Origin: Mytilus californianus
Taxonomy: Eukaryota
DNA: 64,000 bases
Reading direction: 5' to 3'
Assembly: GCF_021869535.1 (NCBI RefSeq)
Contig: NW_026262582.1
Span: forward strand, 32,860,001 to 32,924,000
Positions 900-62,301 of this stretch are shown here, piece by piece. The translations under genes were made by a program, and so were the position numbers. The notes below the pieces were generated by a model, which was not told the DNA's origin, searched no databases, and worked only from the letters and a program-made list of their open reading frames with translations. Position 1 is the first letter of the stretch. Each line of letters opens with the position of its first letter.

Positions 900-1419
900 T
901 TATTGCATCATCTTGTATATAACAATCTAGGACTTTGTGTGATTATCAATTGCTGTATTAATGTACTCTGCAGATGTTGTTACTGCGCTTGTCGGTAATG
1001 TAATTGTATTCTGATAAATATTTGGGATGATGTCACTGTATTGGTGCATTTTGATAACTGAAAGAGTTAAAGTCTGATAGGCATTTTCATAACTGTCACC
1101 AGGTCGTCCTATAAAAGAGCTTGCATTAGAGCTTTCTCCATCAACTCTTGACAAAACACCATTGCTTTCGTCGTCATTTGATACATTGTCATTGTTCTCT
1201 TGGTTACTTATTGGATCAACAATCACATTATTATTATTTATTGTACCAATGTCATCATATTGATCTTCTGAAGTGATTTCCACCATCGCATTGGAGCTGC
1301 TTTGTCGACCAAACAGCAATACATACGTGAGACAATACAGCATATAAGCATTCCTCCGATAATGGTTCCAATAACCACCGTGCAACCATTGTATGCAGTA
1401 GGCGTAATAAGTTCATACT
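900..1419 (-). pseudogene. Locus A terminal exon (TM + cytoplasmic tail), frameshifted
   Basis: Acceptor tttcag|AG TAT GAA. TM reads VVIGTIIGGMLICCIVSRMYCCL, then is 1 nt shorter than B, giving a stop at 1238-1240. Tail frame (ORF 927-1385) has QYDDIG, YENAYQTL, YSDI, YQNTI. TAG at 927-929 replaces the W of WLVxY. Ancestral TAA at 900-902, with 3'UTR similar to B. Confidence 0.9.
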
Positions 1420-1964
1420 CTGAAAAAAAGAAAAATTTCTTTTTAATTCTTGCACGTTTGATTGTCAGTTTACTGAACTTTTGAAAAAGTTTAATGTTAC
1501 TACTACTTATTCTACTTGTAAGACGAGATTATCAAGCGAGTTTACTACAATTGATTTTCTGGCAAGGATAATGCTTTTACATGTTGTATAACAAAATATT
1601 GATTTTCAATTGTATTTTTTAGGAGACTATCATTTGGTAACCAGAGTGTAGTAGGAGGACAGCTTTCCTCGGATTGGCTATTCATTTTAATTTGTTGCAT
1701 TGTTTTGATCAAGTAATATTCATATACATCATAGTTTATGCAAGATTATTTTGTTTTCATTTGTTCAAAACAGGACAGAATATTCATTTAGCAGCCCGCC
1801 CAAAAAATAAAATAGTCGTCCCGTTATGGAATATGTGTTAAAGGCTATTTTTCATTGTTACAAGAGCCCATGTCAGCATACGTTTTAATAAAATAATAAA
1901 AAAGAAACTGCAATTATATAAACATATTATAGTGAGTTTTTCTTGCAACCTTTGATTATATATC

Positions 1965-2950
1965 AAAATGAAGATGTGGTTTGATTTCCCATCAGATTAC
2001 TCTCCACAAGAGACCAAAATACACAGAAACTAACAGTTATGGATCATCGTACGGCCTTTAACAATGAAAAAGGTCCAAACCGCATAGGCCCAGAAATCAC
2101 AAATGTAAAACGATCCAAACGAGAAAACTAACAGTCTAATTAATTTAAAATAAACGAAAAACTAATATGTAAAACAGCAAAAAACGATAACCACTTAATT
2201 ACAGGCTCCTAACTTAAGCAGGCTGATTCACACAGAATGTGACGGGAGTACACGTGTGAGCAGAATCCAAACACTCCTCCAAACCTGGGACAATGGCGAA
2301 ACAATACAACATAACAACAAAATATCAGTTGAAAAGGCTTAACTCATCAGATGGCTAAGAATAGAAAAACATATAACAAAAACATGAATGGATTTGGCCA
2401 GGTTCGGGTGAATCTCACAAGCAAACAGACACTTATTACATATCTGAGAGTACTTGCAATTACTGACAGCTAGTTCAAAGCCAATGACAACTTATAGAAG
2501 CAAAAATATATCTAAGATTAAATTATCAATCAGTACACATTCAACATACAATTTATTTAGTGTAAACATGTCATAAACAGTCAGAGAAAAACATGACCGT
2601 GTACAATGCCAAGATACAGCAATCGACAGATTGAAGATCACTGAAAGTGCATATGTATATAACAATAATATTTAGTTTCATTTAAATCTACTCATAACAA
2701 AATCAATATTTATTAATGATATAGAAATACTTTATTTTATTTTTTTCTTAGAAAAAAACAATGTTCAAAGATCCAATGACAGTCTTGAATTGGTAATCTT
2801 TTAGAATACTGTTTGTTTCAAGGATCGTTTCTAAATTACCGGGGTCAGTAAACCACATCTCCGTAATAATGAGGATGTGCTATCCCGTTTGAGGTAAATT
2901 TTTGACGGGAACAACCAAACTTCTAAACTAAATGTTTATATCTATGGAAG
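1965..2950 (-). mobile_element. 5'-truncated Penelope-like element copy (family 1; RT C-terminus + 3'UTR)
   Basis: Reverse-complement match to 9370-10278 (gggatagcacatcctcat...gagaccaaaa...gaagatgtgg). Confidence 0.8.
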
Positions 2951-3359
2951 AATTTAGTAAAAGTTTTAAGTAATTGGTGGTAACGAAATCCCTGATTTAA
3001 TAATTAACGACTAATACAAAGATTATGTTAAAATCTTAAACGTCACAACAGACAACATCACCATAAAAAAGGGAAAATTAACAATAGGCAACTATGGTAT
3101 CTAGCAGTTGTGTCAAAGTCATTACGAATACAGTTATGAGTCTCATCATGTGATCTCAAAATGTTTTACAAATTTGATTGTTTAACTTTCATTTTAGGGG
3201 TTGTTGCAATATTGAGTTTATATGATCACGCTATAATAAACTAATAAATTAAATCTGATATTTTAAGCAAGTAATTACACTTAAGTCAGATACGCATTTA
3301 CACAGAATCATAATAGTCGATCACTTAGCCAACCAGAATCTTCCCGATTATGTACTTAC

Positions 3360-3648
3360 CAACAATTCTAGCTTCTGTAACATTTGTATATTCACTATCT
3401 CCAATTACATTTCTAGAAAAAATGCGCACAACATATTGTTTATTTGATAACAGTTCATATATAGTGTATTTTATTTCATTTTCCAATATATCTTTTATTG
3501 AACCTGTGGTTGTCCACCATTTTCTGTCAATATTTCGATACTGTATGAAGAATAATTGATTGAATCCGCCATTAAAACCTGGAATCCATGACAGTATTAT
3601 ATGGTTTTCGTATTGAACCACTGTTATAATGTTGAGGTTCTGGTATAC
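3360..3648 (-). pseudogene. Locus A FN3 exon
   Basis: W..GFNGGFNQ.F.IQY...Y...I.SRN.IG.S FN3 pattern, donor G|GTAAGT. Length is 289 nt versus 291 nt in B, a 2-nt deficit just after the acceptor. Confidence 0.85.
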
Positions 3649-4708: not shown

Positions 4709-5030
4709 TGGCTGATCTTAGGTAAACAGTATATGAATTACACCCTTTTATGTTACAAGCCTCTATTGTATAATTTACAAAGACTTCCTCAGTCGCTACG
4801 CCAAGATGTACAACAACTGTTTATCTCAGGTACAATAATTTTGAAACCATGAAATATACTTGAAATATGCGCCTTTCTCGTCGTAATACTTGGATGTAGA
4901 ACCTTGTTATGATTTGATATATTAAGTCTTATAATATCAAGTGCACTGTGCAAAATGAAAGTAATATTCAGTTCACATCTATATATCCCAAACTGCACTC
5001 TTTTGTTTGTTGAAATGAAGATGGGCGGTG
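4709..5030 (-). pseudogene. Locus A Ig5 exon, frameshifted
   Basis: ttag|CA CCG CCC ... A|GTACGT. Length 322 nt versus 321 in B. Frame switches near ataaacagtt and continues as VVVHLGVATEEVFVNYTIEACNIKGCNSY. Confidence 0.88.
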
Positions 5031-6399: not shown

Positions 6400-6955
6400 G
6401 TTCAGTGATTTCCTTGATAGAGGGTTGCTGCTCACACGGACGCTATTAAACCAAGCAGCGCCTGCATACGATCTATATATCTCCCGATTAATACGATATT
6501 CCCGAACTTGTATTTCCTATCCTGATTTCCTTGATAGAGGATTGCTGCTCACAAGGAAGTTATAAAACCAAGAGTTCGAAATGGTGAAGTTCAAATCATC
6601 CCTTTACGGACGCCATCACGAGTAGATTGACCGTTATGGAATAACCGTTTCACATATGATATCGGATATGTTTCTTACGTCGTAACTACAATCCCCATCT
6701 CTTTTCATGAATGTGACCTACCTAATTAGACTATTTACTGGGTGTGTAATAACATGACCAACACAAAAGGTGTTACATGTGGAGCAGGATCGGCTTACCC
6801 TTCCGGAGTACCTGAGATCACCCCCAGTTTTTGGTGGGGTTCGTGTTGTTTACTATTGTTTGTCTGTTTGTCTTTTTTCATTTTTAGCCATGGCGTTGTC
6901 AGTTTATTTTTGATTTATGAGTTTGACTGTTCCTCTAGTATCTTTCTTTTCTCTT
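6400..6955 (+). mobile_element. Penelope-like family 2, 3' fragment with a ~116-nt internal duplication
   Basis: Encodes degenerate AYG.YISRLIRY / RGLLLTRKL RT C-terminus, followed by the ggagcaggatc.gcttacccttccggag 3' motif. gatttccttgatagagg occurs twice (~6408, ~6524). Confidence 0.8.
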
Positions 6956-6959
6956 TCGG

Positions 6960-9900
6960 TGATAATGCATGTTAGGTATGTTCGATTTCTAAAACACATT
7001 AACCAAAGAAAAAATATTTATATGAAAACAAAAGGAAATGAAGTTAAAAATAGATATACGTCTGTAACATCAGACGTGAATGTAGAAAATAATACTCTCT
7101 TAACGTGAAACTGTGAATCGTCGAAGTTTAGATATGTTCCATATGGCCATGTTATTACAGGGGACCTCAATATCGTCCAGGACAGAGAGGTTAACACTTT
7201 TAAAAAAAAAAGAACAACATATCGTCCTCCATCTAAAATAGATTGGAAAGAGTGTCGTTAAGTCACCAAAGATGATATCTCCTCTTTTTGTAATAAGTGG
7301 TGTAAACGGGAAAAATCTGATAAAAAATCTCTTGATTCTTCTTTAAATAAATGTATGAATGTGGTAGATAATAGAATATTACATTTTGAAAATAATTTAG
7401 AAGTAAATAATAGAGTACATAGTACGTCTATTTCCAGAATAAGAAATCAACTTCAAGAACTTTCAAAGCGGTTTGTGTTTGTACCGACCGACAAAGCAGC
7501 CAACAATGTGGTGGTGGTATGTACTACACTGACGTTCTTAAGAATGAAATTTTAAAGTCATCTACTTTCAAGTCCATGCGCTCCACAGAGAGTCATATAG
7601 TAAACAAACATATCATAACCACATCAAAGCTTAAGGCTTCTTCTGAACATTTGAAGGTCCCTTATATATATTGCTTACCTAAACTACACAAAAAAACATT
7701 TAAATATCGTTTCATCTCGGCCTCTAGTCAGTGTTCTACAACTAATCTTTCAGTGCTTTTAACAAGTTCCTTAACTACTATCAGGGGTCGCATTTAAGCA
7801 TTTTTGTGTACTGGACAGTCGGACCATTGGACTGAAAAAATCTACTGGTCCGGCTCCAAATCTACTGGTCCTTAATTGCTAATATAAATGGTAGATTTTT
7901 TGTGCTGTTTTGATTGTTCATGAGCATGTACAGAATCTACCTTGAAAATTGAAGATCCCGTTACAAAAATACATTTTTTATCTATATCTGTCACTGCAAA
8001 TTTTTCACATGTAATACAATTTATTACATCGCGATCTACTATATGATTTAACCATTCACGATCTTTTTCCCAGGATTTTTTATATTTACGTTTCCTCCTT
8101 TATTCCGATCTTCCTTTGAATGTCACTTATTTTATTTTTTTTATCCGGCGGTTTAACTCCTTCCAAAAATTTCAACATTTTGTGTTGTTGTGAAGGAAGC
8201 TCACCTGAGATATTAATTAAGTTAATCAATTGTTATACTTAGTACACCCCCATTACCTTGTAATTGATTTTGCAGGTTAAATTTGGTAAACAAAACGAGA
8301 TTGCGATGCCTTCAGTGATTTTTATCATCAAATTTCTACTGGTCCGCCGGACAACCAGCTGACAAAATCTCCTGGTCCGACGCATACTCTACTGATCTCG
8401 GACCACTGGACCAGCGCTAATTTCGACCCCTGACTACTATTAAAGAGCTTATCATAAACTATTGTAATAACATATATGAACATAACGGAATTAACTATTT
8501 TTGGATTGAAAAAATGTCTTTGGATGTTTTAGATAAATGACGTGCTTTTGATTGTCTTTTTGATTCTGTTGACAGTTTTGAGTTTTCTACTCTTTACACT
8601 ACACTTCCACACTATCTTATTTAATAAAAGTTTTCCTATTTAATTAAATGGTCGTTTTGAAAATCTGAATGCAAATATATTTGCTGCAACTCATTTAAAG
8701 CCTTCTTCTCTAATGACAAAGGTAAATATGCTAGATATACTTACTGGAGGTGTGTTGAGATGATTAAAGCTGTTAATTTTTTCCTTGATAATATTTATGT
8801 ACGTTTCGGCAACAAAGTTTATCGACAGGTTGTAGATATCCCTATGGGCACTAACTGCGCCCCTTTAATAGCAGACTTGTTTTTGTATTATTATGAATTA
8901 CGGTTAATGACTAAACTCAGTAAAGACGCGTCGAAATTGCATTTAATTGATAAATTCAACAACTCTAACCGTTATCTTGATGATATGTTTTCGTTAAATA
9001 ATCAAGAATTTTCTCAATATACTGCTGACATTTACCCCAAGGAACTTACTTTAAATAAATCAAATTTAAACGGTAATAACTTTCCTTTCCTAGATTTAGA
9101 TATTTCGGTTTTAAACAGGAAACTCCACACTAAAATTTACGACAAAAGGGACGATTTTTCGTTCCCTATTGTTAATTTTCCATTTTTAGATGGTGATGTT
9201 CCTTTGGCACCATCTTACGGTGTTTATATATCACAGCTCGTTCGCTATGACCGTGTGTGTTGTGACGTTTTTGATTTTAACGAACGTAATCTATGTATTA
9301 CTGGTAAATTATTAAGCCTGGGATTTCGTTACCATAAATCACTTAAACCCTTTACTAAATTTTTCCATAGATATAAAGATTTGGTTTTGAAGTTTGGTTG
9401 TACCTTTAGAAAATGTATATCAAACGGGATAGCACATCCTCATTTTTACGGAAATATTGTTAACCGTGCCCGGAAATTTAGAAATGATCCTTGTAAACTT
9501 ATCGCTCCTTTAAATAAATTTATTCTAAAAGGTTACCAATTCAACACTGTAATAAGATCATTGAATACTGTTTTGTTTTGGTAAAAATATTGATTTTGTT
9601 ATCAGTAAATTAAAAGCAAACTAAATATTACTAGTATGCTATATACATATGTGCATTCATGGATCTACAATCTGTTGATACCTTTATCTTGGCATTGCAC
9701 AAGGTCATGTTTTTATCTGACTGTTTATGACGTCTTTACACTAAATCCATTTGATGTTGGATGTGTACGGATTGATAATTTAGTCTAAGATGCATGATTT
9801 TTTTATTAGTTGTTAATGGCTTTCAACTAGCTGTCAGTTAACTGCGAGTACTCTCAGATCTGTACCTAGTGTCTTTTTATTGTTGGGATGTACAAGTACC

Positions 9901-10278: not shown

Positions 10279-10282
10279 ATAC

Positions 10283-10582
10283 CTTCATATTGAACAGATA
10301 CTGCTCCTTCCTGAAACAAATTTCCATTTCTAGCTTTTATACCATTCGATACTCTACATACATGTACGTAAATGCCAAAATGTTCAAGAAGTGTCTTATT
10401 GCTTTGTGCTATTATCGTAAGGCTTCCGGTTTGAGTTCCTTCGATTTTACGAATTGTTTTATTGAATTCCGATAGGTAGTACCATTTTGCAAAGGTGTAA
10501 TTGTTAGGTTCACCCTTCGGATGACAATTTATATTGATAGTTTGACCAATAATGCTGTTCGACACACTCACTAATGGATGGT
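10283..10582 (-). CDS. Locus A Ig4 exon (open; 6-nt in-frame insertion)
   Basis: ttacag|AC CAT CCA ... G|GTATAT. Reads INCHPKGEP...W...GIYVHVCRVSNG. 300 nt. Confidence 0.85.
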
Positions 10583-11034: not shown

Positions 11035-11180
11035 ACAGAACCTTGATATGTATATACGATTCCGATGTTCCAATTTCATTTGAAGCTGAACATGTATATA
11101 TTCGTGTGTTAGTACGATGGATTGGGCTGAATGTCAAACATGATGTGGTATCTGCAGTTTTTTGGAAAGACATATTTTTT
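11035..11180 (-). pseudogene. Locus A Ig3 exon remnant (3' half)
   Basis: TTSCLTFSPIHRTNTRIYTCSASNEIGTSESYIHIKVL T|GTAAGT matches B exon 40582-40842. Upstream part has in-frame stops and no recognisable homology. Start coordinate is approximate. Confidence 0.8.
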
Positions 11181-12854: not shown

Positions 12855-13251
12855 ATCGAATATCCAGTATAACTGTATCTGTCAATGGCCTTTCTAACAT
12901 GGTACTGACGGCAGAACATTGAAATGATTTCAAAATGTCCTTTTTACTTGGAACAAACGAATGTGCTATATTACTACTCGCATCGCTCTGAATGGTTGAA
13001 CCGTTTTCAGTTAAAGAGAGAGTTTCTGTTGGTTTACCGCTGTTTACAGAACAAACTATATCTAGTTTATGTCCTGCGATTCCTCGAATACGTTTCTGGT
13101 GTCTCCTTCCAAACGTATTCAGGAAAGTCAAGTTGTTTGGTTATATTTGATGCGTTTCACTCAGTTTTAGTTTGTAACCCGGATTTGTTTTTATCTTTAT
13201 CGATTTATGAGTTTCGAACAGCGGTATACTACTTGCCTTTTTTTGATGAAC
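12855..13251 (-). pseudogene. Locus A Ig2 (C2-like) exon interrupted by a ~103-nt repeat insertion
   Basis: Acceptor gttag|GT TCA TCA, insertion 13141-13243 (in-frame TAG), then PNNLTFLN...LDIVCSVNSGKP...FQCSA...T|GTAAGT. Confidence 0.85.
13141..13243 (-). mobile_element. Short fragment of interspersed repeat family 3
   Basis: ggcaagtagtataccgctgttcgaaa...aaatccgggttacaaact matches the start of the copy at ~16625. Confidence 0.8.
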
Positions 13252-13730: not shown

Positions 13731-14072
13731 TCTTTAGATCAACGGTGAATACAAGTATGTAAACTATTCCAGATTTCCAATGCTCGCAATTGTAATTCCC
13801 CACACCTAAGTCCGAGAAATTTCTGACAACCAAACTGCATTCATCGTTTTCATTATATCCAATAATATTAATGTTCAAGTCGTTAAGTTTCGGATTGTGA
13901 ATTAAGCCAGCCGTATAAGGTTCTTCCTCATATTTATCCATTTTTGTAATTGAAGATATTTTTGGACCTGACCATGAACTTTCATTATGCAGACTGCATG
14001 TAAAATTGAGGACAACATTTTCACCCTTTTCTACAAAAATCTGTGTGTGTGTTCTTCTAAAATTAGCATAAC
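13731..14072 (-). CDS. Locus A IgV exon (open)
   Basis: atgcag|GT TAT ... A|GTAAGT, 342 nt. Reads VVLNFTCS..SWSGP..PYTAG..CSLVVRNFSDLGVGNYNC. Confidence 0.88.
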
Positions 14073-21931: not shown

Positions 21932-22467
21932 TCATTGTTTTCTTTTGTATATTACAAGCCAGTGATTTATGAGACTATCCATTGAAATATTTAAGTATTT
22001 GGAAGTATTTTTCGACAAGCTAGGTGGAAATATAATCGTGTTTTGATAATGGCTTGAGACGATGTTACTATAATGATGCATATCGATATCACAAAGATTT
22101 ATCGCTTGATACGGATTTTCATAACCGTCACCAGATTGTTTTATAGAAGAGCTGTCATCAGAGCTAACAACATGAACAACATCGGCTCTTAATATATTAT
22201 CGTTACTTTCGATACTGCTTGAGGCATTATCATTATTCAATCCTGCATTGTTGGCTGTATGATCAAAAATAGCATTGTTGTAATTCAAAGTTCCTATTTC
22301 ATCATAGTTATTATCTGGATTCATGTTAACAATCTCGCTCATGTTTTTTCCACGCTCACTGTAGCAGAAAATATGTAAGCATCCACATAATAAAGCTATT
22401 CCTGCAGCTATACTGCCCATTAATATCCAACAATACCCATATACATATGTAGATTTAAAGTCGTCGT
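21932..22467 (-). CDS. Locus C terminal exon (TM + Tyr-motif tail), open
   Basis: tttcag|AC GAC GAC. TM CWILMGSIAAGIALLCGCLHIFC, then YDEIG, YNNA, YENPYQAI, YSNI, YQNTI, WLVIYKRKQ*. Confidence 0.9.
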
Positions 22468-24217: not shown

Positions 24218-24400
24218 CTGTAATAAGATTTAAAACAAATAAGAAAGCATAGTAACGAGAAACGATAAGAACGCAGACAGAACAATGGACGAACACGAGT
24301 CAACATAACAAAGATGCCAGTTAATTAAGATATATGTATGGCATTTTATTATTATTATCATTGATATAGCTATCTTTGATATTTTAGATTGAAAACTCAC

Positions 24401-24439
24401 CCAAAGAAGAGTCAACTGATGGGCTGGTTGTTCTGCTAT
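24401..24439 (-). CDS. Locus C stalk micro-exon 1 (39 nt)
   Basis: ttgttttacag|AT AGC AGA ACA ACC AGC CCA TCA GTT GAC TCT TCT TTG G|GTGAGT. Confidence 0.75.
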
Positions 24440-34938: not shown

Positions 34939-35164
34939 CTTTAACTTTTGATTATATTACTTAATTGAAATGGGATTACAAAATCTTGTAATACATTAAC
35001 ATTTTTGAATTTAAAACATTATTCATGTTATATTTATTATGATAAGTTATTTCAACACTTTCTTGTTCAGACACAAGATATACATCAAATCAAATGTTTT
35101 CTACAGTAAACTCAGTACAGATAAAAGATTTAAGTCCATGATGCTATTACTGTCTTAGTTCAGG

Positions 35165-40936: not shown

Positions 40937-40980
<44 letters not shown>

Positions 40981-43900
40981 CTGTTTATAGAAAATATGTA
41001 TCGAAACAACATGACAAATAGGTCAAATTGATATGGCGTTGGTACTTATTTAAATGATTAAAAAATCGAAAACTCTACGTTTCTTTGTATTTCTAAGTTA
41101 TTCAAACTGAAAGACTCGCATACATCAAATACATATTATTTCAAAACAATTTCGAAAAAGAACATTCACGTCATCGCTGACAATGGTGTACGATTGAACT
41201 GTAAACTATTTTATACGGAACAGCAAGGAAGAAGTTACAAAAATAAATACCTACGATTAAAGATGCGTACTTAACATGATATGAAAAAAATTGCGTATAT
41301 TTCGAGAACTGCTACAACACTTTGATCTTTTTAGGTTGCACTTTGTAAATACGGATGTCCCGCAAACCAAGCCTCATTTGGGGTGATATATTATATTCAT
41401 AAATCATTTGTTTTGTTGACGTACTGGTTCCCAGATGAATGTATAATCTCTATGTTTCATCTCATAGAGACACAACCATGATAACTTGTGAATGTTACCA
41501 ATATAAATACACATGAAAAGCGGTAAATTTAAAATCTGAGGAAAACCCAAAATGAAGAAAGGAGTATTGCAGACGTTAAATATAATTTTAAAATCCTAGA
41601 AGTTCAGGGAATATAAATTTTGAAAATATGCAACACAGGCTTATGTTTGACCTTATTTTGTTACAAGGCTTCATTTGTTCATTCGTAAAGTTTCTGTTTG
41701 CGTTTAGCAACGGTTAAGCAGTTGTGTTATATTAAGCATGTTTCTCCGAGTAGATACGACATGCAAGGATTTTAATGTTTTATTACGATCTCCTGAAAGT
41801 AAGTTACATATATATTCAACACAATAACTTAATTCTTGCTTCTCACAAAAATTATAAACATAGAAATATTCTTAATATCCTTTTTACTATATATATAGCA
41901 TGTTTAACTCAACTTCGTTCTTTCATCTTTGAATTTCCACAAAAGTGTGTTAACAATGTAATTTACAGAAATGACACTCGAACGACAAACATAAGTTGAT
42001 ATATGATAGATAACCTACATGTTAATACATTAAAAAAAAGTACGCAAACATATTTTTGTACTTACACTGGATATCTAATGTTACTTCATCCGTCAAAGGC
42101 ATTTCTATCATCTCACGGAAGGCAAAACATTTAAATAATTTCATGTTGTCTCTTTTGGTTGGGGTAAACGAGTATACCAGTGTACTACTTCCACCCATTG
42201 CTACATCTGAACCATTTAGGGTCAAAAGAAGAGTTCCCTCAGGTCTACCGCTTTTAACAGTGCAAACTATGTCAAGTGGTTGTCCATCTGTTCCGCTTAT
42301 TATTTTTTTGTCCTTTGTTTCCAATGTATTCAGAAATGTCAGGTTGGTTGGAGGACCTTTAAAATTATGTTTTGACACGTAAATAAACAAATAAATTTAA
42401 AAAACATGAAAAGCTGTTTCTCTATCCATTGTTTCTGGAAATGTTAGCAGTCACTGGGAAAGTTTCCTATCTTTAGTAGTCTTTAAAACAATACTATTCT
42501 CCGTTTATTTGACTGACAATAATATATTGTTGTTGACGCACATTCAAACTTTCAAAACAAATAATGTGATGTTTTTTTAATATGTCGTTACAATCAAGGG
42601 GCTTTGTTAATAGCCATTATCAACCTTGTTGATTCATGCTGTGCTGGAAATCGTATCATAACTATGGTTGTTACATTTGAAGAAAGAGTGTGTGCTCTCT
42701 TTGTATCAGTTCTTGATTTTGTACATTTATAAATACCTTACACTTTATTGCTAGAGAAATGAAAGAAAATATTTTTGTCTGAATGGTTCATTTACAAAAA
42801 AAATATAAATCCTTTTCATCGGAAAAATGTCATGAAACAAGAGAAAAAACATAAACTATCCGTTCATGTAATTACACTAACAATTGGAACGTTTTATACA
42901 ATTGCATTTAGATTACATTGTGCATCTTCATCAATTAAAAAATATACCATGGGCTGTGGTTATATTTTTACGTATATATAATGAATATACCACGTTATTG
43001 TCTTTAATACAATAGGATACAAATCTTGCAAATCTTTGCTGATATTATTTTTGTTGACGGTATATAGAAATGTGTCACAAATTAAATTAACTTGACACCC
43101 CTAAGTGTGTTTGACGCCAAAAAAACTTAATATATATATTTGAATAGCATAATAGTAAATTAATGATGTCAGATCAAGTATAAAATATTTTTGGCAAGGC
43201 AATTAGTTAAAAAATGTCTCGACTGTACGGTCATATATATTTTAATAATAGTTTCTTTCACATTCAACCAAAATCATTAAGTGTCAAATAATTGACCTCT
43301 TTATCTTTGATTTGTTATATTATAACTTATGATATAATGAGTTGAGACTTATCAATAGTAAGTTGAGGGATATTTATACATATATGAAACAGTGGGTGTA
43401 TTTCAGATATTTTTTCGAGACTTTAGTGTGTAATATTTTCATTTGAAGTTCGCCCAGACAGTCCATCATCATGATTATATCATACATTTTGTTTCGTTTC
43501 ATGAAACACTTATACTTTAACTTACTTTTTAAATATAGTGTGAATTTATTTAAATACAACACTCCTGATTTCCATAACTCGCATGTGTAGTTTCCAGTAT
43601 CTACATCTGAGACATTTCTTATAACCAAGTTGCATACACTTTTACTATAATCTCCAATGATATCAATATTCAAGTCTTTAAGATTTTTGGTGAGTATCAG
43701 GCCTTGTGCGTAAAGATCTGTTCCTTGATCCTTTCTCGTTCTTCTAATTGTCGATCTTTGTGGACCGTACCATGAAGTTACGGTTTGACGGGAGCAAGTG
43801 CAATTGAGAATAACGGTTGCATCTAATTCAACAAATATGCTAGTGTGGGTCTTTACGTAAGGTGATTTACCTTGATAAGAATACAATTATGATGATTAAT

Positions 43901-44331
43901 GTATTCAAAATATATTTCCACGTTTTCCCTTTATATTTGAAAAATAAATGTTTTTATAGCTTAAAATAGATTACATTTTTGAAATAATAAATAACAGGCC
44001 GTGAATTCGTGTGTTAAAGAAGGGTCAGTTGCATAATATGAATATATTTTTTCCATTGATCTTGCTAACATTCAAACGGTTATATCATATGAATATAGAC
44101 TTTTTGCGCTGATGCTGCGTGAAGAAATCGTCAATCAATCAAGCATTCAATAAAAAGGTTATACAGATTCTAATAATTGCTTCACGTTTCTAAAAGACTT
44201 ATCAACTGTAATATTTATGTTGTTTCACATTGCTATTTCAAATATGTCTGCTAACTGAATGCTAGTATATTACCTGAGGAAAAACAATAAGACAGAATTG
44301 TCACTAAAATCGTCAGCGAAATGACTAACAT
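35165..44331 (-). CDS. Locus B: IgSF receptor (signal-IgV-4Ig-FN3-TM-Tyr tail); seven exons open, Ig4 exon frameshifted by a 7-nt insertion
   Basis: Eight exons with canonical AG/GT and phase-1 joins (see exon entries). Confidence 0.85.
36955..37245 (-). CDS. Locus B FN3 exon
   Basis: ttctag|AT TTA CCA CAA ACC CCT (LPQTPTNLTV...W..FNGG..Y..YFVRMFSRNKIGDS) G|GTAAGT, 291 nt. Confidence 0.92.
37904..38224 (-). CDS. Locus B Ig5 exon
   Basis: tttag|TA CCA CCA ... G|GTAAGC, 321 nt. Contains HFGNYTVVACNFEG. Confidence 0.9.
38857..39344. mobile_element. Probable MITE (~490 bp)
   Basis: TA-agaccctgttc ... ggaaagggtct-TA short inverted termini, with internal atcga repeats. Confidence 0.5.
39647..39947 (-). 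pseudogene. Locus B Ig4 exon with 7-nt frameshifting insertion
   Basis: ttccag|AT CCT CCA ... G|GTATAA, 301 nt = 294+7. ORFs 39742-39993 and 39549-39857 hold the two halves of the domain. Confidence 0.9.
40582..40842 (-). CDS. Locus B Ig3 (I-set-like) exon; absent from the ORF track
   Basis: ttgcag|AC AAA CCA: KPILFDDYLAHQEVIENTSLEVCCHGHSNPPISHLYWTG...GRYTCFASNSIGTSNTSIEINVL T|GTAAGT, 261 nt. Confidence 0.92.
40941..40978. repeat. (AT)19 microsatellite
   Basis: Read directly. Confidence 0.95.
42066..42356 (-). CDS. Locus B Ig2 (C2-like) exon
   Basis: ttaaag|GT CCT CCA (PPTNLTF..LDIVCTVKSGRP..FKCFA) T|GTAAGT, 291 nt. Confidence 0.92.
43526..43870 (-). CDS. Locus B IgV exon
   Basis: atcaag|GT AAA ... 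A|GTAAGT, 345 nt. Reads VILNCTC..SWYGP..CNLVIRNVSDVDTGNYTC. Confidence 0.92.
44274..44331 (-). CDS. Locus B signal-peptide exon
   Basis: MLVISLTILVTILSYCFSS G|GTAATA, preceded by an atatag acceptor. Confidence 0.85.
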
Positions 44332-44754: not shown

Positions 44755-45715
44755 TAAGAGCTGAGGCGGAAGATACCAAATTCATAAGTGGAAAATAAAC
44801 TGACAACGCCAAGACAAAACAAAATAAAGTAGTGACAAAAGACAAGCAACAGTATTCAAAACACAACATACTTATAACAAATTAGGCAACACGAAAGCCA
44901 CCACTAACTAGGGACAATCTCATGTGCTTCGGAAGGGTAAGCAGATCCTGCTTCATGGAAGAGGGACGAAAGATACCAGAGGGACAGTCAAATCCATAAA
45001 TCGAAAATAAACTAACAACGCCATGGCTAAAAATGAAAAAAGACAAACAGACAAACTATAGTACACATGACACAACATAGAAAACTAAAGAATAAGCAAC
45101 ACGAACCCTACCAAAAACTAGGGGTGATCTCAGGTGCTCCGGAAGGGTAAGCAGATCCTGCTCATCGTGTGGCACCCGTCATGTAACAAATCCGGTTAAT
45201 AATCTAATTCGGTAGGTCACATTCATGAAAGGGAAGGGGATTGTAGTTACGACATAAGGGACATATCCGATATAATCTGTGAAACGGTTATTCCAAAATG
45301 GCCAACCAACTCGTGATGGCGTCCGTAAAATTTACGAAGGAATGATTTCAACTTCACCATTTGTAACTCTTGGTTTAATAGCTTCCTTGTGAGCAGCAAC
45401 CCTCTACCAAGACATTGATGATAGAAAATACATGCACAGGAATATCGTATCAATTGTGAGATATATACCCCGTATGCAGGTGCTGCTGGAATGTTGCTAC
45501 TTAGAAATGGAAAGTTCACAATTTGAAAGCTGGAACTTGTCGTGTTGCTCAAGTTGATACAAATCCGGTGACAATTCTAACTAGTAAGGTCATATTCGGG
45601 GAAAAAAGAGATAATACCGGTTCTAATAATTGAAACATATCCATCGTCATTTGTAAACATATTTTTCGTAACGGTTTTCCAACCCGTAATGGCGTCCGCT
45701 AATTACAAAAATAAA
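44755..45715 (-). mobile_element. Partial-tandem stack of PLE family 2 3' fragments
   Basis: Well-preserved copy 44960-45545 (FPFLSSNIPAAPAYGVYISQLIRY) flanked by diverged partial copies at 44755-44950 and 45545-45715. Confidence 0.8.
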
Positions 45716-48509: not shown

Positions 48510-48892
48510 TCATTGTTTTGTCGTGTATATAACAAGCCAAGGTTGCCTGAGGCTATTCATAGCAATGCTAAAGTGTTTTGGGGTGTTTGTCACCAATTCG
48601 AATGATAATATCATCGTGTTCTGATAATTGTCATTGATGATACTACGATAATGATGCATTTCGATATCGCAATGGTTTATACAGTAACTTGATAAGAGTT
48701 TTCATAACTGTCACCAAACTGTTTTGTTGATGAGCTATCATCGGAGCTAACGATATCGGCTCTTGGTATTATATCGTTTGATTCGATAATACTCGATACG
48801 CTTTTAATATTCACTTCCGCAGCATTGGATATCCAATCAAATATATCAGTGTTATAATTCAAAGTTCTTATTTCATTTTCGTAGTTGTGTTT
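48510..48892 (-). pseudogene. Locus D: orphan C-type cytoplasmic tail fragment
   Basis: TLNYNTD..RADIVSSDD..GDSYENSYQ, frameshift, then CDIEMHHY..YQNTM..PWLVIYTTKQ*. No TM or acceptor upstream. Confidence 0.85.
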
Positions 48893-51223
48893 TTTTGAGG
48901 TTTGAAGCACTGCGTTTAATCATTAATTTAGTAGTTGTATTGGTGTTTTTGATAACAAACAATGTTAAGACGTTTTGATAAGTATGTTGTCAACATAAAG
49001 GGTATGACTTTTTAAAAGGACATAGATTTGTGACGTATATGACGCAATACATAATAGGACAAATATGTGAGGATGAACAAATGTGTAACTATTCAAACTA
49101 TATTAATAGCTACATCAGTTGGAAAGCAAGTCCTTGGAAACATCTGTTGTCGTCAAGCTCTATCAGCAACAATAGCAGGGGGAATTGATTATGTGGCGCT
49201 TCAGTCGTCCGTGACGTCAAAAAGTCCAGCTAATCAATCGGCTAAAAGATTGACGTTTAGAGTATTTTTTCAACTTGTCATGCTTTTATCATAATTGAAC
49301 TTTAAAATTTGTTGGTTTTGCGACCAATATAGTTTCAATACGACATATAAACATTATCAAAAATAGCTTGTTATTACTATTTTTTTTATCTTGTCCGTTC
49401 TAAAAAAAATTCAGCCATCTGTTTGTTTGCCAAAAGCATCGATTTTTCATAACTTGACGTTTGCGTATCCAAATACGGAAATGAACGGTAATAACCTTAA
49501 ATAAAACCGGGTAATCTATTTCAAGTTTCTGCATAATTTGAAGCCATCATTTTTTACTATTATACATCAATTTTAGTGACCACCAGTCATGTCAATTTGT
49601 ACTTGGTTTTGGCTGCGTTTCTACTTCAAAACAGTAAAGTTCAACTTCTTTTCATTGTATCTGTTACCAAAGTACTATAACATACTGATTTTATTATATA
49701 TATGAATGAAATTGTAATTAAAAATTGTTGTTTTTTACAATTCCATACGATACCTCCATTTTAAAGTAATTAAATTTCTTTTTGATCCCCTACACAAATT
49801 GACGCTGACATTGTTTTCTTTTTCAACATACGTCATATAACTTTAATAAAATATGTGTCAGGGTCATGTGCATAGTGAATATTTGGAAAAGTGAAACAAC
49901 AAACAAAGTTCTTTTTTATAGCGTTTGAGACTATGCGTCTTAGAAAAATTCATTTATACTGGAAACAAATTAATGATAGCTTATGGTTGGACAAAAGCAC
50001 AAAAAATAGCAATAGAAAATGCATTGCAAAAAAAAATTTTGGAGGAAAACACATATGAAAAAAGGAAAAGAGGGTCAGTTAATTATATTTATATTTATAA
50101 GTTAAAACCCTTGCTTATTTAATTATCTCTTTACTAGGTAAGCTACATTAATCAGAGCAAAAACTAGCTTATCAAGTAAAACAAGAAGTTAGATAGAGAT
50201 GTGTTTTAACAAAATTGAATTTATTCAAATGGCAAATTCTTGTCAAATTTAATCATTATTGATCATTATCAAAGTAAAATGCACAAGATTTGTCCCACCA
50301 ACTTTCATTTCATTTCTGAGATTGATATCCAATTAATCGGGTAAAATATACAATACTTTGTTTTGAAATATGTTAAGCAGCTGATACAGCAGCCTGAAGA
50401 GAAGAAGCACCATTTTTTTTCTCAAAAAGTTTACTTTAATAATCTTTGAAATACCCTGAGAAATTAGACAAGGCTGCCGTTTCATAAAACAATCGCTAAT
50501 AACGATTACCGTTAATTTTAGCGTGTAACTAACGACTACATAACGATGACGTTTACGTGCGTTTCATGAAGCATACGTAGACGAATCGTTAGAATTTTCG
50601 ATCGCTAGACAATCGCTATTTATTTATAGCACGGGAATCCCCGGATATCGCACTCTTTGTCGTTGGAGAAAAATCTGCTAGCAAACGATTGAAAGTAAAA
50701 AAGACTCCAAGTACAAGAAATCTCAATTTTAAATGTTTCCTCCAACGAGGTAGACTTAATAAAATTGTTTCTTATTTATTAAAGAATAATTCATGCAAGT
50801 CCTAGATTAGTTGGAAATTTTCACATGACACACGATTTATTTTTGCGTAGCCAAATTGGCCTTCGTAGGCTATGCGTACCCGCAACCGATTTTATAATAA
50901 ACTGTCATATGATCGGGAATGAAACGTGAAAGATACACGAAAAATATCGGCTATTTCCTGACTTTGTGAATTCAGTGAAGATAATGGCAAAAAATATTTT
51001 TTTAATTTGTATTATTAGTTATAATACCGAAATTAAATGTAAATGCACATTAAAAGAATAAAATTATACAGAATATGAATAAATATATGTAAAAAAAACT
51101 CGAGTGAAATATTATTGGTTATATTTGTTTCGCGATCATTACAAGTAATATCTAAAAAAGTCATATTGTGTTCCTGTAATATAAATCTATACTACTCAAG
51201 GAAGAGAACGATTTCATTGAGCA

Positions 51224-53534: not shown

Positions 53535-54092
53535 CGGTGGCAGAATGCTGCCATGTAAGAAAAAAATACTGTTCCCTCAAGATACTTTGTCGTTCCCTCA
53601 AGATGCTATGCCGTTCCCACAAGAAAGTGTTATCGTTCTCTCAAGATATTATGTCGTTACCACAAGATAGTTATCTCGTTCCCTTAAGATGCTATGTCGC
53701 TCCCTCAATATGCTATGCCGTTCCCACAAGAAAGTTATATCGTTCTCTCAAGATATTATGTCGTTACCACAAGATAGTTATGTCGTTCCCTTAAGATGTT
53801 ATGTCGTTCCCTCAAGATGCTATGCCGTTCCTACAAGAAAGTTTTATCGTTCTCTCAAGATATTATATCGTTTCCACAAGATAGTTATCTCGTTCCCTCA
53901 AGATGTTTTGTCGTTTCCATGAGATAGATATCTCGTTCCCTCATGATGATATGTCGTTCCCTCAAGATATTATGTCGTTCCTTCAAGATATTATGTCGTT
54001 CTCACAAGATAGTTATCTCGTTCCCTCAAGATGCTATATGCCGTGTCCACAAGATAGTTATCTCGTTCTCTCATAGCCGCATATTACCACCG
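53535..54092. mobile_element. TA-flanked MITE carrying an internal minisatellite
   Basis: TA-cggtggcagaatgctgccatg versus (rc) TA-cggtggtaatatgcggctatg. Confidence 0.7.
53571..54070 (+). repeat. 21-22-bp minisatellite (~23 units) with a 5-mer, 107-bp higher-order repeat
   Basis: Unit ~gttccctcaagata/gttatgtc. The variant ending gatgctatgcc recurs at 53592, 53699, 53806. Confidence 0.92.
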
Positions 54093-55601: not shown

Positions 55602-57052
55602 TATCAAAATATCTGACGTCACAAGTTTTTTTTTATAAATATACCCTCATACCCTTCCCATATCTTTTTGAAAGAGTGCTGCTTTTTTTTTTCTAACAGC
55701 TACAGATTTAGATAATTTCAAATGCACTCGTGGAATAAAAATTAAAAACAAAATATTATTAATATTTCAACCGGAGTTATTATAATTGGACAAACAAGCA
55801 CTCCCTGCCAAAACGCGGACGTGACAGAAGACACCTGTTAGTAGCGTCAACAGTAAACATTTGGTATAAAATTTAATTTGTCCATGTTTTTATTCATATA
55901 TCACCAACAAATGGTTTGGTCCAGATATTTCTGATTGTTTTGTTGAAATAATTTGTTATACATATAAATTGTAAGTACATAGCACGCACATTCTCTTTTA
56001 CTTTACCCAAAAGTCTGTGTGAAAGGAGGTTTTGAGAAATTTATCAAAGTCGTCCTTTCAAGGCGTGGTAAAAGTGTATCTGAAAACTCAAATATGCCCT
56101 ATCTACCAAGACGGTAGCGAAATATGATATATGTGTCATTTAAATTGTCCATGATTGCAATCCTTCCCTGAAAACCCTGTGTCGTCTAAAGATTCGGTGT
56201 CGGTTGTGCCTCAAAGTATGCAAGGCGACGGCCATCTTTTATGTAAAGATCGCTTTGCGACAGGTTTAACCACACGTAAATAGCGTTCGCGATTCACACG
56301 CAATGTACGACCATCGCAAAGTACGATTGTTTTATGAAACGGAATTTTAGCGTTACGTTTGGTTAACGTTTAAACGTATGCTAACGATTGTTTTATGAAA
56401 CAACAGCAAGGGCTACTGTGCTAGCTAATCTAATAGTTGAATTTTACAATAATAATGATTTTAAAATTCAAAATTATGTCACTTTCACTAATAATTTGAA
56501 GCATTATTTTTTTTCAGAATTTCTGTCAATATTTTTAGTAAACTTATCCTTTTTCTGTAGGATATTTTCTAGGCAGTATTGTACTGTTCAACTAAGAAAC
56601 AGGCTTGAGTTTAAAGGCTCTTTTACTTTGAAGAAACCTATTGTGACTCTTGGTCCCACTTTATAGAATATAGAATATAAATGATTAGTACTATTTATTA
56701 TTTTACTTTCCAGAAAGATTATTCAAATTGTATAAAATATGTTTTATTGCATTAAAAATAATAAGAAGTGTTTAAAAAAATTCTACTAGGAGTGATCCCA
56801 TATACCATTATAAAAAAATACAAAGTATATTTCATCAGCCAGAGCTAATTTGTATCAATATAGCTAGGTTTCTACATGTAGGTGCCATTATCCACATTTC
56901 TTAATCATTTTTTTTACTAATTTTTTGTCTTTTAATTTTTACATCTAATCCTTCTCTGAAAAGTAGGGAAGTATCATTCTTTTCTTTATATTTTTTTAAC
57001 ATAGTTGTTAATCGAATTTCGTTTATTTTCTTTCTGATTTTTGTAAAGTATA

Positions 57053-57925
57053 AAAAAAGAAGATGTGGTATGATTGCCATTGAGACAACTCTCCACAAGA
57101 GACCAAAATAACACAGAAATTAACAACTATAGGTCACCGTACGGCCTTCAATAATGAGCAAAGCCCATACCGCATAGTCAGCTATAAAAGGCCCCGAAAT
57201 GACAATGTAAATCAATTCAAACGAGAAAACAAACGGCCTAATTTATGTACAAAAATTGAACGAAAAACAAATATGTAACACATAAACAAACGACAACCAC
57301 TGAATTACAGGCTCCTGACTTGGGACAGGCACATACATACAGAATGTGGCGGGGTTAAACATGTTAGCGGGATCCCAACCCTCCCCCTAACCTGGGACAG
57401 TGGTATAACAGTACAACATAAGAACGAACTATAAAAATCAGTTGAGAAAGCTTTACTCATCAGATGGACAAAAATACAAGTGAACGTGGACAGGTACTTG
57501 TACATCCCAACAACAAAAAGACACTAGGTACAGATCTGAGAGAACTCGCAGTTAACTGACAACTAATAAAAAAATTCATGCATCTAAGACTAAATTATCA
57601 ATCCGTACACATCCAACATCCAATGGATTTCGTGTAAAGTCGTCATAAACAGTCAGAGAAAAACATGACCTTGTGCAATGCCAAGATACAGGTTTCGACG
57701 GATTGTAGATCCATGAATGTGTATATGTATATAACATACAAGTAATATTTAGTTTGCTTTTAATTTACTGATAACAAAATCAATATTTATACCAATAAAA
57801 ACAATATTCAATGATCTTATTACAGTGTTGAATTGGTAACCTTTTAGAATAAGTGTATTTAACGGATCGACAAGTTTACCAGGATCGTTTCTAAATTTTC
57901 GGGCACGGTTAACAACATTTCCGTA
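57053..57925 (-). mobile_element. 5'-truncated PLE family 1 copy (RT C-terminus + 3'UTR)
   Basis: Close reverse match to 9450-10278. Confidence 0.88.
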
Positions 57926-59869: not shown

Positions 59870-60150
59870 TTACAAGTTGAAAGTAATATTGTTAGCTTTT
59901 GAGTCATATTTTTTTTTTACATTAAATGTCTTACATGTTACATTTTTGTAACAAAGAATAGTTTGTTGAGTGTTTTTTACTTGATCCATTTGCTTTCTCG
60001 TTTGAATTGTTTCACATTTTTTTTTTATGTTTTGGCTTTTTATAGCTTTCTGTGCGATATGGGTTGTGCATTTGATCAAAGGCAGCATGCTTCAATCTAT
60101 TTTATTTGACCTCTTGTGGATTATGTGTCATTGACAATCAGATTATTTGT
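59870..60150 (+). mobile_element. Decayed PLE family 1 3' end
   Basis: ttctcgtttgaattgttt..ctttt(a)tagct..ctcttgtgga..gtgtcattgacaatca. Confidence 0.55.
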
Positions 60151-60170
60151 TTTTACTTTTTTGGATTCGA

Positions 60171-60214
60171 GCGTCACTGATGAGTCTTTTGTAGACGAAA
60201 CGCGCGTCTGGCGT
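60171..60214 (+). ncRNA. Minimal type-I hammerhead ribozyme
   Basis: Stem I gcgtca/tggcgt (2 G-U pairs), core CTGATGA, stem II gtct-tttgt-agac, GAAA, palindromic stem III acgcgcgt, GUC cleavage triplet (cut after 60208). Confidence 0.85.
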
Positions 60215-61795
60215 ATATACAAAATTTAATCCTGGTATCTATGATGAGTTTTTTTATACTTATTGTAGCTGTACAAACTTTAGCATCCTTTAATTTAAAA
60301 AAATATCGACGAAAAGGAAACACAAAAAAAAAGAAAATACTACAAAGACAAATAGAGATTTAGCGACGGAGAGACACAATCCCCACCAAAATATAAAGGT
60401 GTCATTGTGTGCTCCCGAAGGGAATGCTGCTTTTTCTTAACTAATGTCATCTGTTTAGTTGCAAATGACAAGCAATAAATCGTTGTTCAGTCTCATTCGT
60501 TCACTTTTTTACTTATAAAATTGAAAAGTTTAATGTTAAGAACGACTGTCTATTGAAACACAGATATATCAAACGATAACTATACATCGTAGATAAAAAA
60601 AAATAAAATAAGCATCAAGCACATTTGCTATGTTAATAACAACATAATGTCGATACGTTAGGCGCGTTTTGGGTACAAAAATTCAACATGTTTAGCCTTG
60701 CATCTGTAGTTTTTATACAAAAACGCATATCTTTTCAATCTTATTTCTGATAAAAAAAAATGTGTATAGATAAAAACACTGTTGTTATCAGTGAAACCAT
60801 GCTCCAAATGGTGAGTCTCGATCACAAAACTTGAAATTTGAAATCAAAATCATACAATATACGTTATTATTCATTCCTTATACATTTCTATTTAAACAAA
60901 AATGTAAAAATGATATTAATACGATAAACTCATCATAGATACCATGATTGAAATTATGTTCGCAAGACATGAGTTTCATAAATAACAGGCTCGAATAAAC
61001 AAGTTGAAAAAGCCAGATAAAGTTGAAGACTATTGAGAACCCCAAATTTCGAAAGTTTTCGAAATATTGAGGACTGTTTAGGATGCAATGGGGTGTCAAC
61101 ATTGTTCACCAAAGGGGATGATCATTCTTTTCCTACCTTTATTCGATAATACTGAATCGTTTGTGTTTCACATTCACCCCTTCATCAAATTTCACAGAAC
61201 GATTTCAAGTCAGAGGTACTGCCTATCTCGATCTCGATGAAATATTTGAATTTGTGAGAAATTGGAAGTTTGCAGCATGACACTTTACAGACACTGTCTA
61301 TATAAAATAATCAGAAATATAACATCCTGTACTTTGATATGCAGTATATTTTAGAGTTTTAACTCAAATTAAGACATATCTATTTTTTCTTACGATGGCT
61401 ATATATATACATGTAGTTAAAGAATTATTAGTTGATTCAGATGTATAAGCATATTCATAGCAACGTCCTTATCTTAATCATTATACTAAACACATGTTGT
61501 GCTCAATATACCAAATACTATCAAGATAACACGATCATATACTAATAAGAACAATTCAAAGATGTATTCAGCTATAAATGATTTGAAACAATGATAAATA
61601 CTTACAGCAAGAAATTTCACGAGCAAGTGCCTAATCACAAATATGAACAATTTGAATGTATTGTAAAGAATGTAATATGCACTTTAGGTATTTTTTTTTC
61701 AATTATCCTAAGTTATGCATGATAAGACAAAACATATTTTAGACACCAAGTATAAAAAATATATATAAGACATATAATTATTTTTTTGTATTCAT

Positions 61796-62301
61796 CTAAT
61801 ACTTTCTCTTGTATATAACAAGCCAGTGATTTATTTTGCTATCCATTGCGAAGTATTTTAACGTATTTTGCAGCACGCTTGACGGGAATATTATTGTGTT
61901 TTGATAATTTTCATTGGTGATACTACTATATTGATGCATATCGATATCACAACGATTAATCGTCTGATAAGGATTTTCATAACCGTCACCATATTGTTTT
62001 AGTGAAGATCTTTCATTGAAACATACGACATCATCCCTTAAAACCATATCTGAGATACTGTTATTATTCAGTCCTGCAACGTTTGTTATTTGTTCAAAAC
62101 TATCATTGTTATAATTCAAAATTTATATTTCACGATCATTAACCTGTGCAGAGAAGTTAAGCGTCCAATTGAATTTTCTTGAACGCTTTACTGAGCAGTA
62201 TATATGTAAGGCAATGCAGAATATTATAATTCCTCCAACTATACTGCCCATGATTGCCCAACAATCACCATACTTATGTGTAGGATTATATTCTTCGTAG
62301 T
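61796..62301 (-). pseudogene. Locus E terminal exon (TM + C-type tail) with in-frame TAA; ectodomain not seen, presumably beyond the window
   Basis: tttcag|AC TAC GAA. TM CWAIMGSIVGGIIIFCIALHIYC, then ...DREI*ILNYNN... (TAA 62123-62125); the same frame continues to YENPYQTI, YSSI, YQNTI, WLVIYKRKY*. Confidence 0.88.

Follow-up and report, generated by a model that had tools for sequence, protein, structure and literature searches.

The 64,000-nucleotide window analysed here (C2:32860001-32924000 of Mytilus californianus, whose genome comprises 1.65 Gb in 175 contigs) contains 62 kb of an expansion, several megabases in size, of type-I immunoglobulin superfamily (IgSF) receptors that is so far found only in Mytilus. 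Its members splice exchangeable phase-1 ectodomain exons (V, C2-like, I-set-like and FN3) onto one common last exon, which encodes a transmembrane segment and a tyrosine-rich cytoplasmic tail. Five paralogous loci, here called A to E, lie in the window, and one of them, C, is a live locus that is transcribed and correctly spliced. The explanation that best covers our observations is a Mytilus-limited cluster of type-I IgSF receptors in which C is live and the tails signal through a Syk/Shark-type kinase in the manner of an ITAM (the tyrosine-based activation motif of immunoreceptors); we give it a probability of about 0.6. The family is real, partly alive and evolving by birth and death; it is also unstudied, and its function is one that we infer.

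The common last exon defines the family. In a repeat search of the window, a stretch of at most 300 nt was found four to five times (families D2, D4, D5 and D10), with spacings of 21.0, 13.2, 13.3 and 13.3 kb. Translation of the copies gave a single exon type, consisting of a short juxtamembrane piece, a transmembrane segment, a basic stop-transfer sequence and a tyrosine-rich tail. By tblastn we identified five paralogous tail exons with E values of 1e-13 to 1e-56, well outside what chance would give. They lie between 903 and 62301 on the minus strand, as does every receptor feature of the window, which has a GC content of 30-35% and no N runs. An earlier, sequence-only reading of this DNA had claimed five same-strand paralogous loci with a conserved tyrosine-rich tail; the repeats and tblastn recovered the loci, and an alignment of the tails bore out their conservation. 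Searches with the exons of locus C by tblastn mapped all homologues in the window, and tblastn with 90 family proteins added no further exons there. Searches and structure predictions were performed exon by exon.

Locus C encodes five Ig domains, an FN3 domain and the transmembrane/tail exon. The same layout is found in A, in agreement with the arrangement of five Ig domains plus FN3 that had been read from the sequence. All seven domain and tail exons of C are bounded by AG and GT in phase 1-1. Ahead of them lies a candidate signal-peptide exon (44274-44331, 58 nt, phase 1), predicted from an ATG with a hydrophobic stretch and an in-phase GT donor, whose open reading frame (ORF) and donor are kept in a paralogue of C, C'. 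The V exon (43526-43870, 345 nt, predicted splice sites) matched Pfam V-set with an E value of 2.6e-5, scoring 24.8 bits against a V-set cut-off of 26 and 23.5 bits against the 'ig' model (cut-off 21.8). The C2-like Ig2 exon (42066-42356, 291 nt, predicted splice sites) matched C2-set_2 weakly (E 0.11), and it is 34-42% identical to the C2-set_2/Ig_3 region of family proteins P0002, P0003 and P0008. The Ig3 exon (40582-40842, 261 nt), whose donor at 40582 is present in an RNA contig, matched Ig_2 (E 1.1e-7) and I-set (24.1 bits). The Ig4 exon (39647-39947), both splice borders of which are present in RNA contigs, measures 301 nt in the reference, with a frameshift and an in-exon stop, and 294 nt in an alternative allele. 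Although Ig2 and Ig4 had only weak Pfam matches, both could be aligned to Ig domains of family proteins. The Ig5 exon (37904-38224, 321 nt) has its acceptor at 38224 in an RNA contig. The FN3 exon (36955-37245, 291 nt, phase 1-1) matched Pfam fn3 with an E value of 1e-5 and 26.1 bits (cut-off 25), and its donor at 36955 appears in RNA contigs. Finally, the last exon (35165-35691) has an intact ORF for the juxtamembrane piece, the transmembrane segment and a tail of 138 amino acids, ends at a stop codon at 35165-35167 and uses an acceptor at 35691 in spliced contigs. The intact allele, with the 294-nt Ig4 exon, is predicted to encode 795 codons, a figure obtained by summing exon lengths.

Domain 5, the product of the Ig5 exon, had no Pfam match. 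Its AlphaFold2 model reached a pLDDT of 79.5 with an alignment of 27 paralogues (an alignment of seven sequences gave 58, which was unusable), and the top PDB matches of this model in Foldseek were all I-set Ig domains (LRIG1, titin, Dscam, DIP and KIT, with TMq values of 0.6-0.69). Domain 5 is thus modelled as an I-set Ig without the canonical disulfide: the canonical B-strand cysteine is absent, and an ACNxxGC sequence is invariant.

The transcription of C was observed in public sequencing runs. We mapped four runs to positions 35100-41000 of the window at a likeness threshold of 95%, so that alleles less than 95% identical would escape. Two runs from 2022, X1 and X2, carried an RNA label that was only a guess of the tool; we took them as RNA because their contigs are spliced. 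Their coverage falls mainly on exons, with some intron in X2, whereas X4, a DNA-like run, spans the introns evenly. The spliced contigs join 36955 to 35691, 39647 to 38224 and 40582 to 39947, each with minus-strand GT..AG ends that coincide exactly with the borders we had predicted. These transcripts derive from C itself, since the X1 and X2 contigs differ from C by 0-2 mismatches each, whereas C', the closest paralogue, differs by 6-15% in exons.

The reference copy of C has a single lesion. Its Ig4 exon contains seven extra nucleotides (GGGGCCC on the coding strand, at about 39790) relative to A and C', and the frame consequently runs into a stop. The seven nucleotides are missing from the X1 RNA contig (depth 10.2 of 10.2) and from the X4 DNA-like contig that spans the introns (27.4 of 27.4), and they are present in X2. 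Because they are missing from X1 and X4, the frameshift is not fixed at the locus; as it is not known how the samples relate to the reference animal, we take it to be an allele that is probably segregating. We also found the same seven nucleotides in another paralogue, C'' (C2:32.34 Mb, 0.55 Mb away), and not in C', which suggests either an old polymorphism or gene conversion between loci.

Comparison of C with C' indicated which parts of the gene are constrained. Exons of the two are 86-94% identical and introns 68-89%. The ratio of nonsynonymous to synonymous differences (pN/pS) was 0.50 in the FN3 exon (p = 0.037) and 0.54 in the tail exon (p = 0.03). It did not reach significance in Ig2 (0.87), Ig3 (0.58), Ig4 (0.3-0.5) or Ig5 (1.09). 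The FN3 domain and the tail of C are therefore constrained, with the distal Ig domains near neutrality. Synonymous divergence between C and C' rose from 0.04 in the V exon to 0.2-0.3 in the exons for FN3 and the tail (p = 0.005 for V against the tail), a gradient that hints at a mosaic or conversion history.

The other four loci are in various states of decay. Locus A has all seven exon types and at least four disabling lesions, and its exons share 48-64% amino acid identity with those of C. The V exon of A (13731-14072, predicted splice sites) is 48% identical to that of C; the Ig2 exon (12855-13145, approximate borders) was placed by homology to C; and the Ig4 exon (10283-10582, 300 nt), recognised by homology and predicted splice sites, is open. 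Alignment with a paralogue, A', showed that the Ig3 exon is a remnant (11036-11151) that has lost its 5' 142 nt. Homology further revealed frameshifts in the Ig5 exon (4710-5030; a 1-nt insertion near 4822) and the FN3 exon (3361-3648; a 2-nt deletion near 3633), as well as two lesions in the tail exon (903-1416): a 1-nt deletion near 1309, and a TAG at 927-929 in place of an invariant tryptophan. This TAG for the tryptophan of the C-terminal WL[IV]IYK (927-929 of the window; also C104:79588-80142) is common to A, A' and probably a further copy, A''; the truncation of the A lineage is older than the block duplications described below.

Locus B contains two V exons and an intact last exon. V1 (28224-28541, 318 nt) is intact, matches Pfam V-set with an E value of 3.5e-14 and shares 26-28% identity with the remaining V exons. 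V2 (25657-25986, 330 nt, predicted splice sites) is split into separate ORFs by an in-frame stop at 25835-25837, and it is 79% identical to the N terminus of M. coruscus P0008. The last exon, for the transmembrane segment and tail (21932-22467), has an open frame of 188 amino acids. Between V1 and V2 lies a relic fragment of a tail exon (27518-27621), found by a tblastn match of tail fragment P0034, whose larger counterparts in the paralogues B' and B'' contain stops. Because this relic sits between the two V exons, B looks like the remnants of two genes. Searches with Pfam and by tblastn with the C exons and family proteins found no C2, I-set or FN3 exons in B. We also considered an ORF at 24233-24670 on the minus strand and rejected it as an exon, as Pfam gave no match for it and its only counterparts in B' and B'' look like repeats. 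Between B and B'', pN/pS was 0.28 in V1 (p = 0.0017) and 0.43 in the tail (p = 0.0003), so both exons are under purifying selection. From its sequence, B could plausibly yield a product of V1, transmembrane segment and tail, that is, a single-V receptor.

Locus D consists of a lone, frameshifted fragment of a tail exon without the transmembrane part (48513-48961), detected through the repeat families and tblastn; tblastn with the 90 family proteins found no ectodomain exons for it in the window. The tail exon of E (61796-62301, identified by its ORF and the tail alignment) carries a nonsense TAA at 62123-62125, where its paralogue E' has a glutamate. The Ig and V exons of E lie 19-26 kb past the end of the window, on the far side of an insertion of about 20 kb that is absent from E'. 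A and D are thus pseudogene relics, and the tail exon of E carries a nonsense codon. The divergence claimed for the ectodomains is evident from A against C and from V1 of B against the other V exons. N-terminal V domains, which the sequence-only reading had assigned to the loci in general, are present in A, B and C, but not in the parts of D and E that fall within the window. Its remark on disabled copies holds for A, D, E and the V2 exon of B, but not for C, whose frameshift belongs to one allele.

The cluster grew by duplication of blocks of several genes, because colinear duplicate blocks are found elsewhere. A-B-C, including introns and spacers (70-85% nucleotide identity), is colinear with C2:32.31-32.35 Mb, 0.55 Mb away; C-D is colinear with C104:261-280 kb; and A-B-E is colinear with C104:126-160 kb, with a further A-like copy at C104:76-89 kb. 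C104 is unlikely to be an alternative haplotype of the window, since gene order differs and introns are 68-89% identical, compared with about 99.7% identity between X4 and C. Decay has proceeded through frameshifts, nonsense codons, exon loss and insertions. The tails of the window represent at least three old lineages that are 40-55% identical to one another. Taken with the pseudogenes and relics, the lesion that other samples lack and the restriction of the tail to Mytilus, the duplicate blocks uphold the proposal of a clustered IgSF family evolving by birth and death. Just before the window, at C2:32841866-32847757 (12-18 kb away), we found another minus-strand member with FN3, two Ig and V exons, the tail exon of which must lie further left.

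Searching the genome with the tail of C gave 54 matches, 9-13 of which contain stops. About 24 loci are at C2 31.6-39.5 Mb and about 19 on C104, with a few at other places. A profile of 20 tails run against 1.84 billion representative proteins gave 82 hits. We looked up 30 of these: 25 were named, 24 of them from Mytilus (M. coruscus, M. edulis, M. galloprovincialis and M. californianus) and one a weak fish hit, and the other five came from unnamed Logan assemblies. The names under which family members have been deposited (titin-like, NEGR1, NCAM, DCC and Ig-like) are automatic. Tail-bearing proteins range from a single V domain, through V plus FN3, to as many as five Ig domains, a range that fits the shuffling of phase-1 exons. 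Our literature search found no paper describing the Mytilus family, and the mussel pan-genome paper is silent on immunoglobulin. At C2:3.13-3.56 Mb an exon that shares 36-42% identity with domain 5, including the ACNxxGC Ig-like pattern, is repeated in tandem at least 12 times, and tail searches had no match in that region; this is apparently a second clustered family with the same odd Ig domain and a different tail.

The tails share a set of tyrosine motifs. Each has a hydrophobic, G/S-rich and Cys-rich transmembrane segment, a basic stop-transfer sequence and a cytoplasmic part of about 138 amino acids with six to nine tyrosines; the tail exons had no Pfam match. Residues Y134, E135, Y138, Y151, Y159, N161, T162, W188 and Y192 are invariant or nearly so (numbered in the 196-residue frame 35168-35755). 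Of the 20 tails, 18 contain the pair ExxYxx[I/V]-x9-Yxx[I/L/V], with Val permitted at +3; with strict I/L the number is 11, and the tail of B is among these. A YxN motif is present in all 20, with two conserved sites, YENP and YQNT, and a YDEI-like site in 15. None of the 20 aligned copies has a charged residue (Lys, Arg, Asp or Glu) in the transmembrane segment, and all share one long tail; paired activating and inhibitory forms, the one with a charged transmembrane segment and short tail and the other with a long tail bearing ITIMs (the tyrosine-based inhibitory motifs of immunoreceptors), are absent among them. The juxtamembrane cysteines suggest possible palmitoylation. In the ESM Atlas, the best matches of the C tail scored 0.77-0.84, below our lead threshold of 0.9, and were to poxvirus A36R, SCIMP and LIME1-type transmembrane adaptors, a weak hint that it may resemble a tyrosine-docking adaptor tail.

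These motifs suggest a signalling mechanism. Grb2 binds phosphorylated YxN, SH2 domains of the Src family bind pYEEI-like sites, and the tandem SH2 domains of Syk bind an ITAM in which both tyrosines are phosphorylated. In the proposed scheme, the ectodomain would bind a ligand, causing the receptors to cluster, and a Src-family kinase would then phosphorylate the tail, in which YDEI resembles the Src SH2 optimum. The ExxYxx[I/V]-x9-Yxx[I/L/V] pair would dock a tandem-SH2 kinase of the Syk/Shark type, and YENP and YQNT would dock Grb2-type adaptors. Such signalling would parallel that of the oyster receptor CgIgR through Syk and ERK.

The closest characterised analogues of the mussel family are the oyster receptors CgIgR and CgIgIT. 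CgIgR of Crassostrea gigas has five Ig domains, a transmembrane segment and an ITAM tail, binds bacteria and Syk, and signals via Syk/ERK, which also shows that a bivalve Syk exists (PMC6994640). Like the mussel proteins, it is a type-I receptor of a bivalve and has five Ig domains, and the mussel ExxYxxI-x9-YxxI fits its D/ExxYxxL/I-x(6-12)-YxxL/I (PMC6994640). By contrast, the mussel tail is longer and a different module, with the additional YxN, YDEI and C-terminal WL[IV]IYK motifs; the mussel A and C have FN3; and the mussel tail exon has some 50 clustered matches. In addition, bacterial binding and Syk recruitment have been demonstrated for CgIgR, whereas signalling by the mussel family is a proposal. 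CgIgIT and CgIgIT2 are inhibitory receptors with five Ig domains and ITIMs (cited in PMC11999971); they share with the mussel family the five-Ig bivalve ectodomain and a tyrosine-motif tail, and differ in that the tails in our window have no conserved ITIM. The suggestion that the family may be uncharacterised in bivalves therefore stands for the family itself, which is unstudied, but not for its members, which have been deposited under automatic names, nor for the kind of receptor, which is known in oyster (PMC6994640; PMC11999971).

Several observations weigh against the reading of C and its relatives as live, ITAM-like signalling receptors. The strict ITAM, Yxx[L/I]-x(6-8)-Yxx[L/I], occurs in none of the 20 tails, in which the spacer is 9, and the C tail has Val at the first +3 position of its ITAM-like pair. 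Relaxed invertebrate definitions, however, accommodate the mussel x9 motif: [D/E]xxYxx[L/I] with an x6-12 spacer in oyster (PMC6994640) and a spacer of x6-9 in Hydractinia (PMC9546547). The expression of C is low, with contig word depths of 3-10 and two reads in the sampled 6% of RNA run X7. The X2 allele also has 8 extra nucleotides in Ig3 and lacks 1 nt in Ig5, both of which break the frame, at a depth of 3-4 at which error is possible. Finally, positive selection could not be demonstrated in the V exon of C, where pN/pS against C' was 1.6 (p = 0.59). The ratio above 1 in V domains that the sequence-only reading had named as supporting evidence was thus not established, and we dropped the proposal of positive selection on V.

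We weighed the ITAM-like receptor reading against four others. The proteins might instead act at cell-cell contacts in adhesion or wiring, in the manner of nectin, nephrin, Sidestep or IgLONs and possibly homophilically, with a tail for coupling to the cytoskeleton or adaptors rather than for immune signalling. The layout of five Ig domains plus FN3 matches those of Drosophila Sidestep (itself five Ig plus FN3) and the nephrin-Kirre (IRM) proteins, with an N-terminal V-like Ig, C2-type Ig domains and a membrane-proximal FN3. Among solved structures, family member P0007 was closest in sequence to MAG, titin, nectin-1, Robo, Dscam, contactin, SYG-2 and IgLONs, and V1 of B matched NEGR1, JAML and NCAM best. 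However, such matches to cell-adhesion molecules in the PDB reflect generic Ig similarity rather than orthology to Sidestep or nephrin; the mussel tail is unrelated to theirs, and its profile is limited to one genus; and some 50 tail matches, many pseudogenes and a sample-dependent frameshift are unlike conserved, low-copy wiring genes. We regard this alternative as unlikely. We consider it quite unlikely that the family is inhibitory and recruits SHP-type phosphatases, as oyster CgIgIT and vertebrate LILRB and Siglecs do. In 8 of 20 paralogues the first conserved tyrosine does lie in an ITIM-type VQY[DYFS][ED][IV], and the tail profile weakly hits a region of related Mytilus receptors a few Mb away, but the corresponding sites of B (NNYDEI) and C (GQYDEI) are not ITIMs, and in both tails the pattern [S/I/V/L]xYxx[I/V/L] matches only at non-conserved positions. 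Immunoreceptor tyrosine-based switch motifs (ITSMs) occur in just 2 of 20 tails, and the invariant tyrosines lie in ITAM-like and YxN contexts. The likeness to the vertebrate LILR, KIR, CEACAM and Siglec clusters is one of organisation: tandem IgSF genes, segmental duplication, pseudogenes, phase-1 domain exons, tyrosine-motif tails and polymorphism in gene content or null alleles. Homology to them is limited to the Ig fold, and the mussel family has FN3 and lacks their short-tailed activating forms with a charged transmembrane segment.

It is highly improbable, in our view, that the cluster is a complex for histocompatibility or allorecognition, comparable to the Hydractinia ARC or the Botryllus FuHC, in which highly polymorphic ectodomains mark individuality. 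Mussels are solitary, the region has not been linked to any phenotype of fusion or rejection, and we know of no allorecognition biology in mussels. There is a genomic likeness to Hydractinia Alr: a multi-megabase cluster of genes with V-set, I-set and membrane-proximal FN3-like domains, one Ig domain without a canonical disulfide, ITAM or ITIM sequences in some tails and expressed pseudogenes (PMC9546547). Other points in favour are the absence of the 7-nt lesion from other samples and the finding that two DNA-like runs contain 0.84 and 0.67 of the words of the locus. However, Alr tails diverge more than their ectodomains (PMC9546547), whereas the mussel tail is the best conserved part in deep comparisons, and no significant excess of nonsynonymous change was seen. 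Allelic diversity at C is also low. C differs from X4, the one DNA sample compared, by about 14 single-nucleotide polymorphisms (SNPs) in roughly 5.5 kb of non-repeat sequence, and the exons in X1 and X2 show 1-7 SNPs. With few samples, and within the 95% mapping threshold, this low density argues against a hypervariable allodeterminant. The immune or allorecognition role put forward by the sequence-only reading thus gained no support from the tails, which had no strict ITAM, no conserved ITIM in the window and no transmembrane charge, or from the SNPs at C. We also judge it very unlikely that the window is a graveyard, with all five loci non-functional remnants and the transcription of C mere noise. 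A, D and E are clearly dead, the reference C is frameshifted, the X2 transcript allele has its extra indels and expression is low; but an allele with an open Ig4 exists in both RNA and DNA, conservation between C and C' is much higher in exons than in introns, and purifying selection is significant in FN3 and the tail of C and in V1 and the tail of B.

The window also contains several repeats. An ORF of 274 amino acids at 8760-9584 (plus strand), in an intron of pseudogene A, belongs to a hyper-abundant repeat, for which a first look across the genome gave 81,136 candidates and scoring gave at least 141 copies of 75-89% identity; fragments lie at 30582-30800 (plus strand) and 45247-45552 (minus strand). 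We rejected this ORF as a reverse transcriptase, as it had no Pfam match and proved to be the repeat. Intron 3 of C holds a very high-copy short repeat (40025-40418; family D12 at 6854-6956 and 40187-40289), with a word depth of 1e5-3e5 in a DNA-like run and of thousands in RNA contig runs. Two stretches at 32511-32918 and 57052-57455 (families D7, D9, D11 and D14) are 93-95% identical, with older copies at 2146-2348 and 21367-21470; the pair looks like a recently active mobile element scattered in the cluster. A tandem array at 53571-54073 has nested periods of 21, 43, 64 and 107 nt, with 11.7 copies of the 43-mer, and gives rise to spurious plus-strand ORFs rich in RSLKILCRS-type repeats. 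A 105-nt tandem repeat (63594-64000, at least 3.9 copies) continues past the end of the window and starts the insertion of about 20 kb upstream of the E tail exon. No tRNA or SINE-like tRNA was found in the window.

Mussels resist infections that are lethal to other bivalves, and they also host transmissible cancers; to our knowledge, their cell-surface recognition receptors are almost unstudied. The sample-dependent seven nucleotides in C, their presence in C'' and the incomplete word shares raise one further idea, which we regard as a long shot: that C2:31.5-39.5 Mb and C104, with about 50 Mytilus-only tail exons, form an individuality or non-self system whose haplotypes differ in their intact receptors. 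If that were true, such differences between haplotypes would influence how well mussels resist pathogens or transmissible neoplasia. Given the oyster precedents for this type of receptor, the advance is incremental. The family combines one signalling tail with many ectodomain layouts, and at C both open and frameshifted forms are found among samples. It provides a gene set and a defined tail peptide that can be used to address ITAM-like signalling in molluscs, and it bears on whether differences in receptor content between individuals matter.

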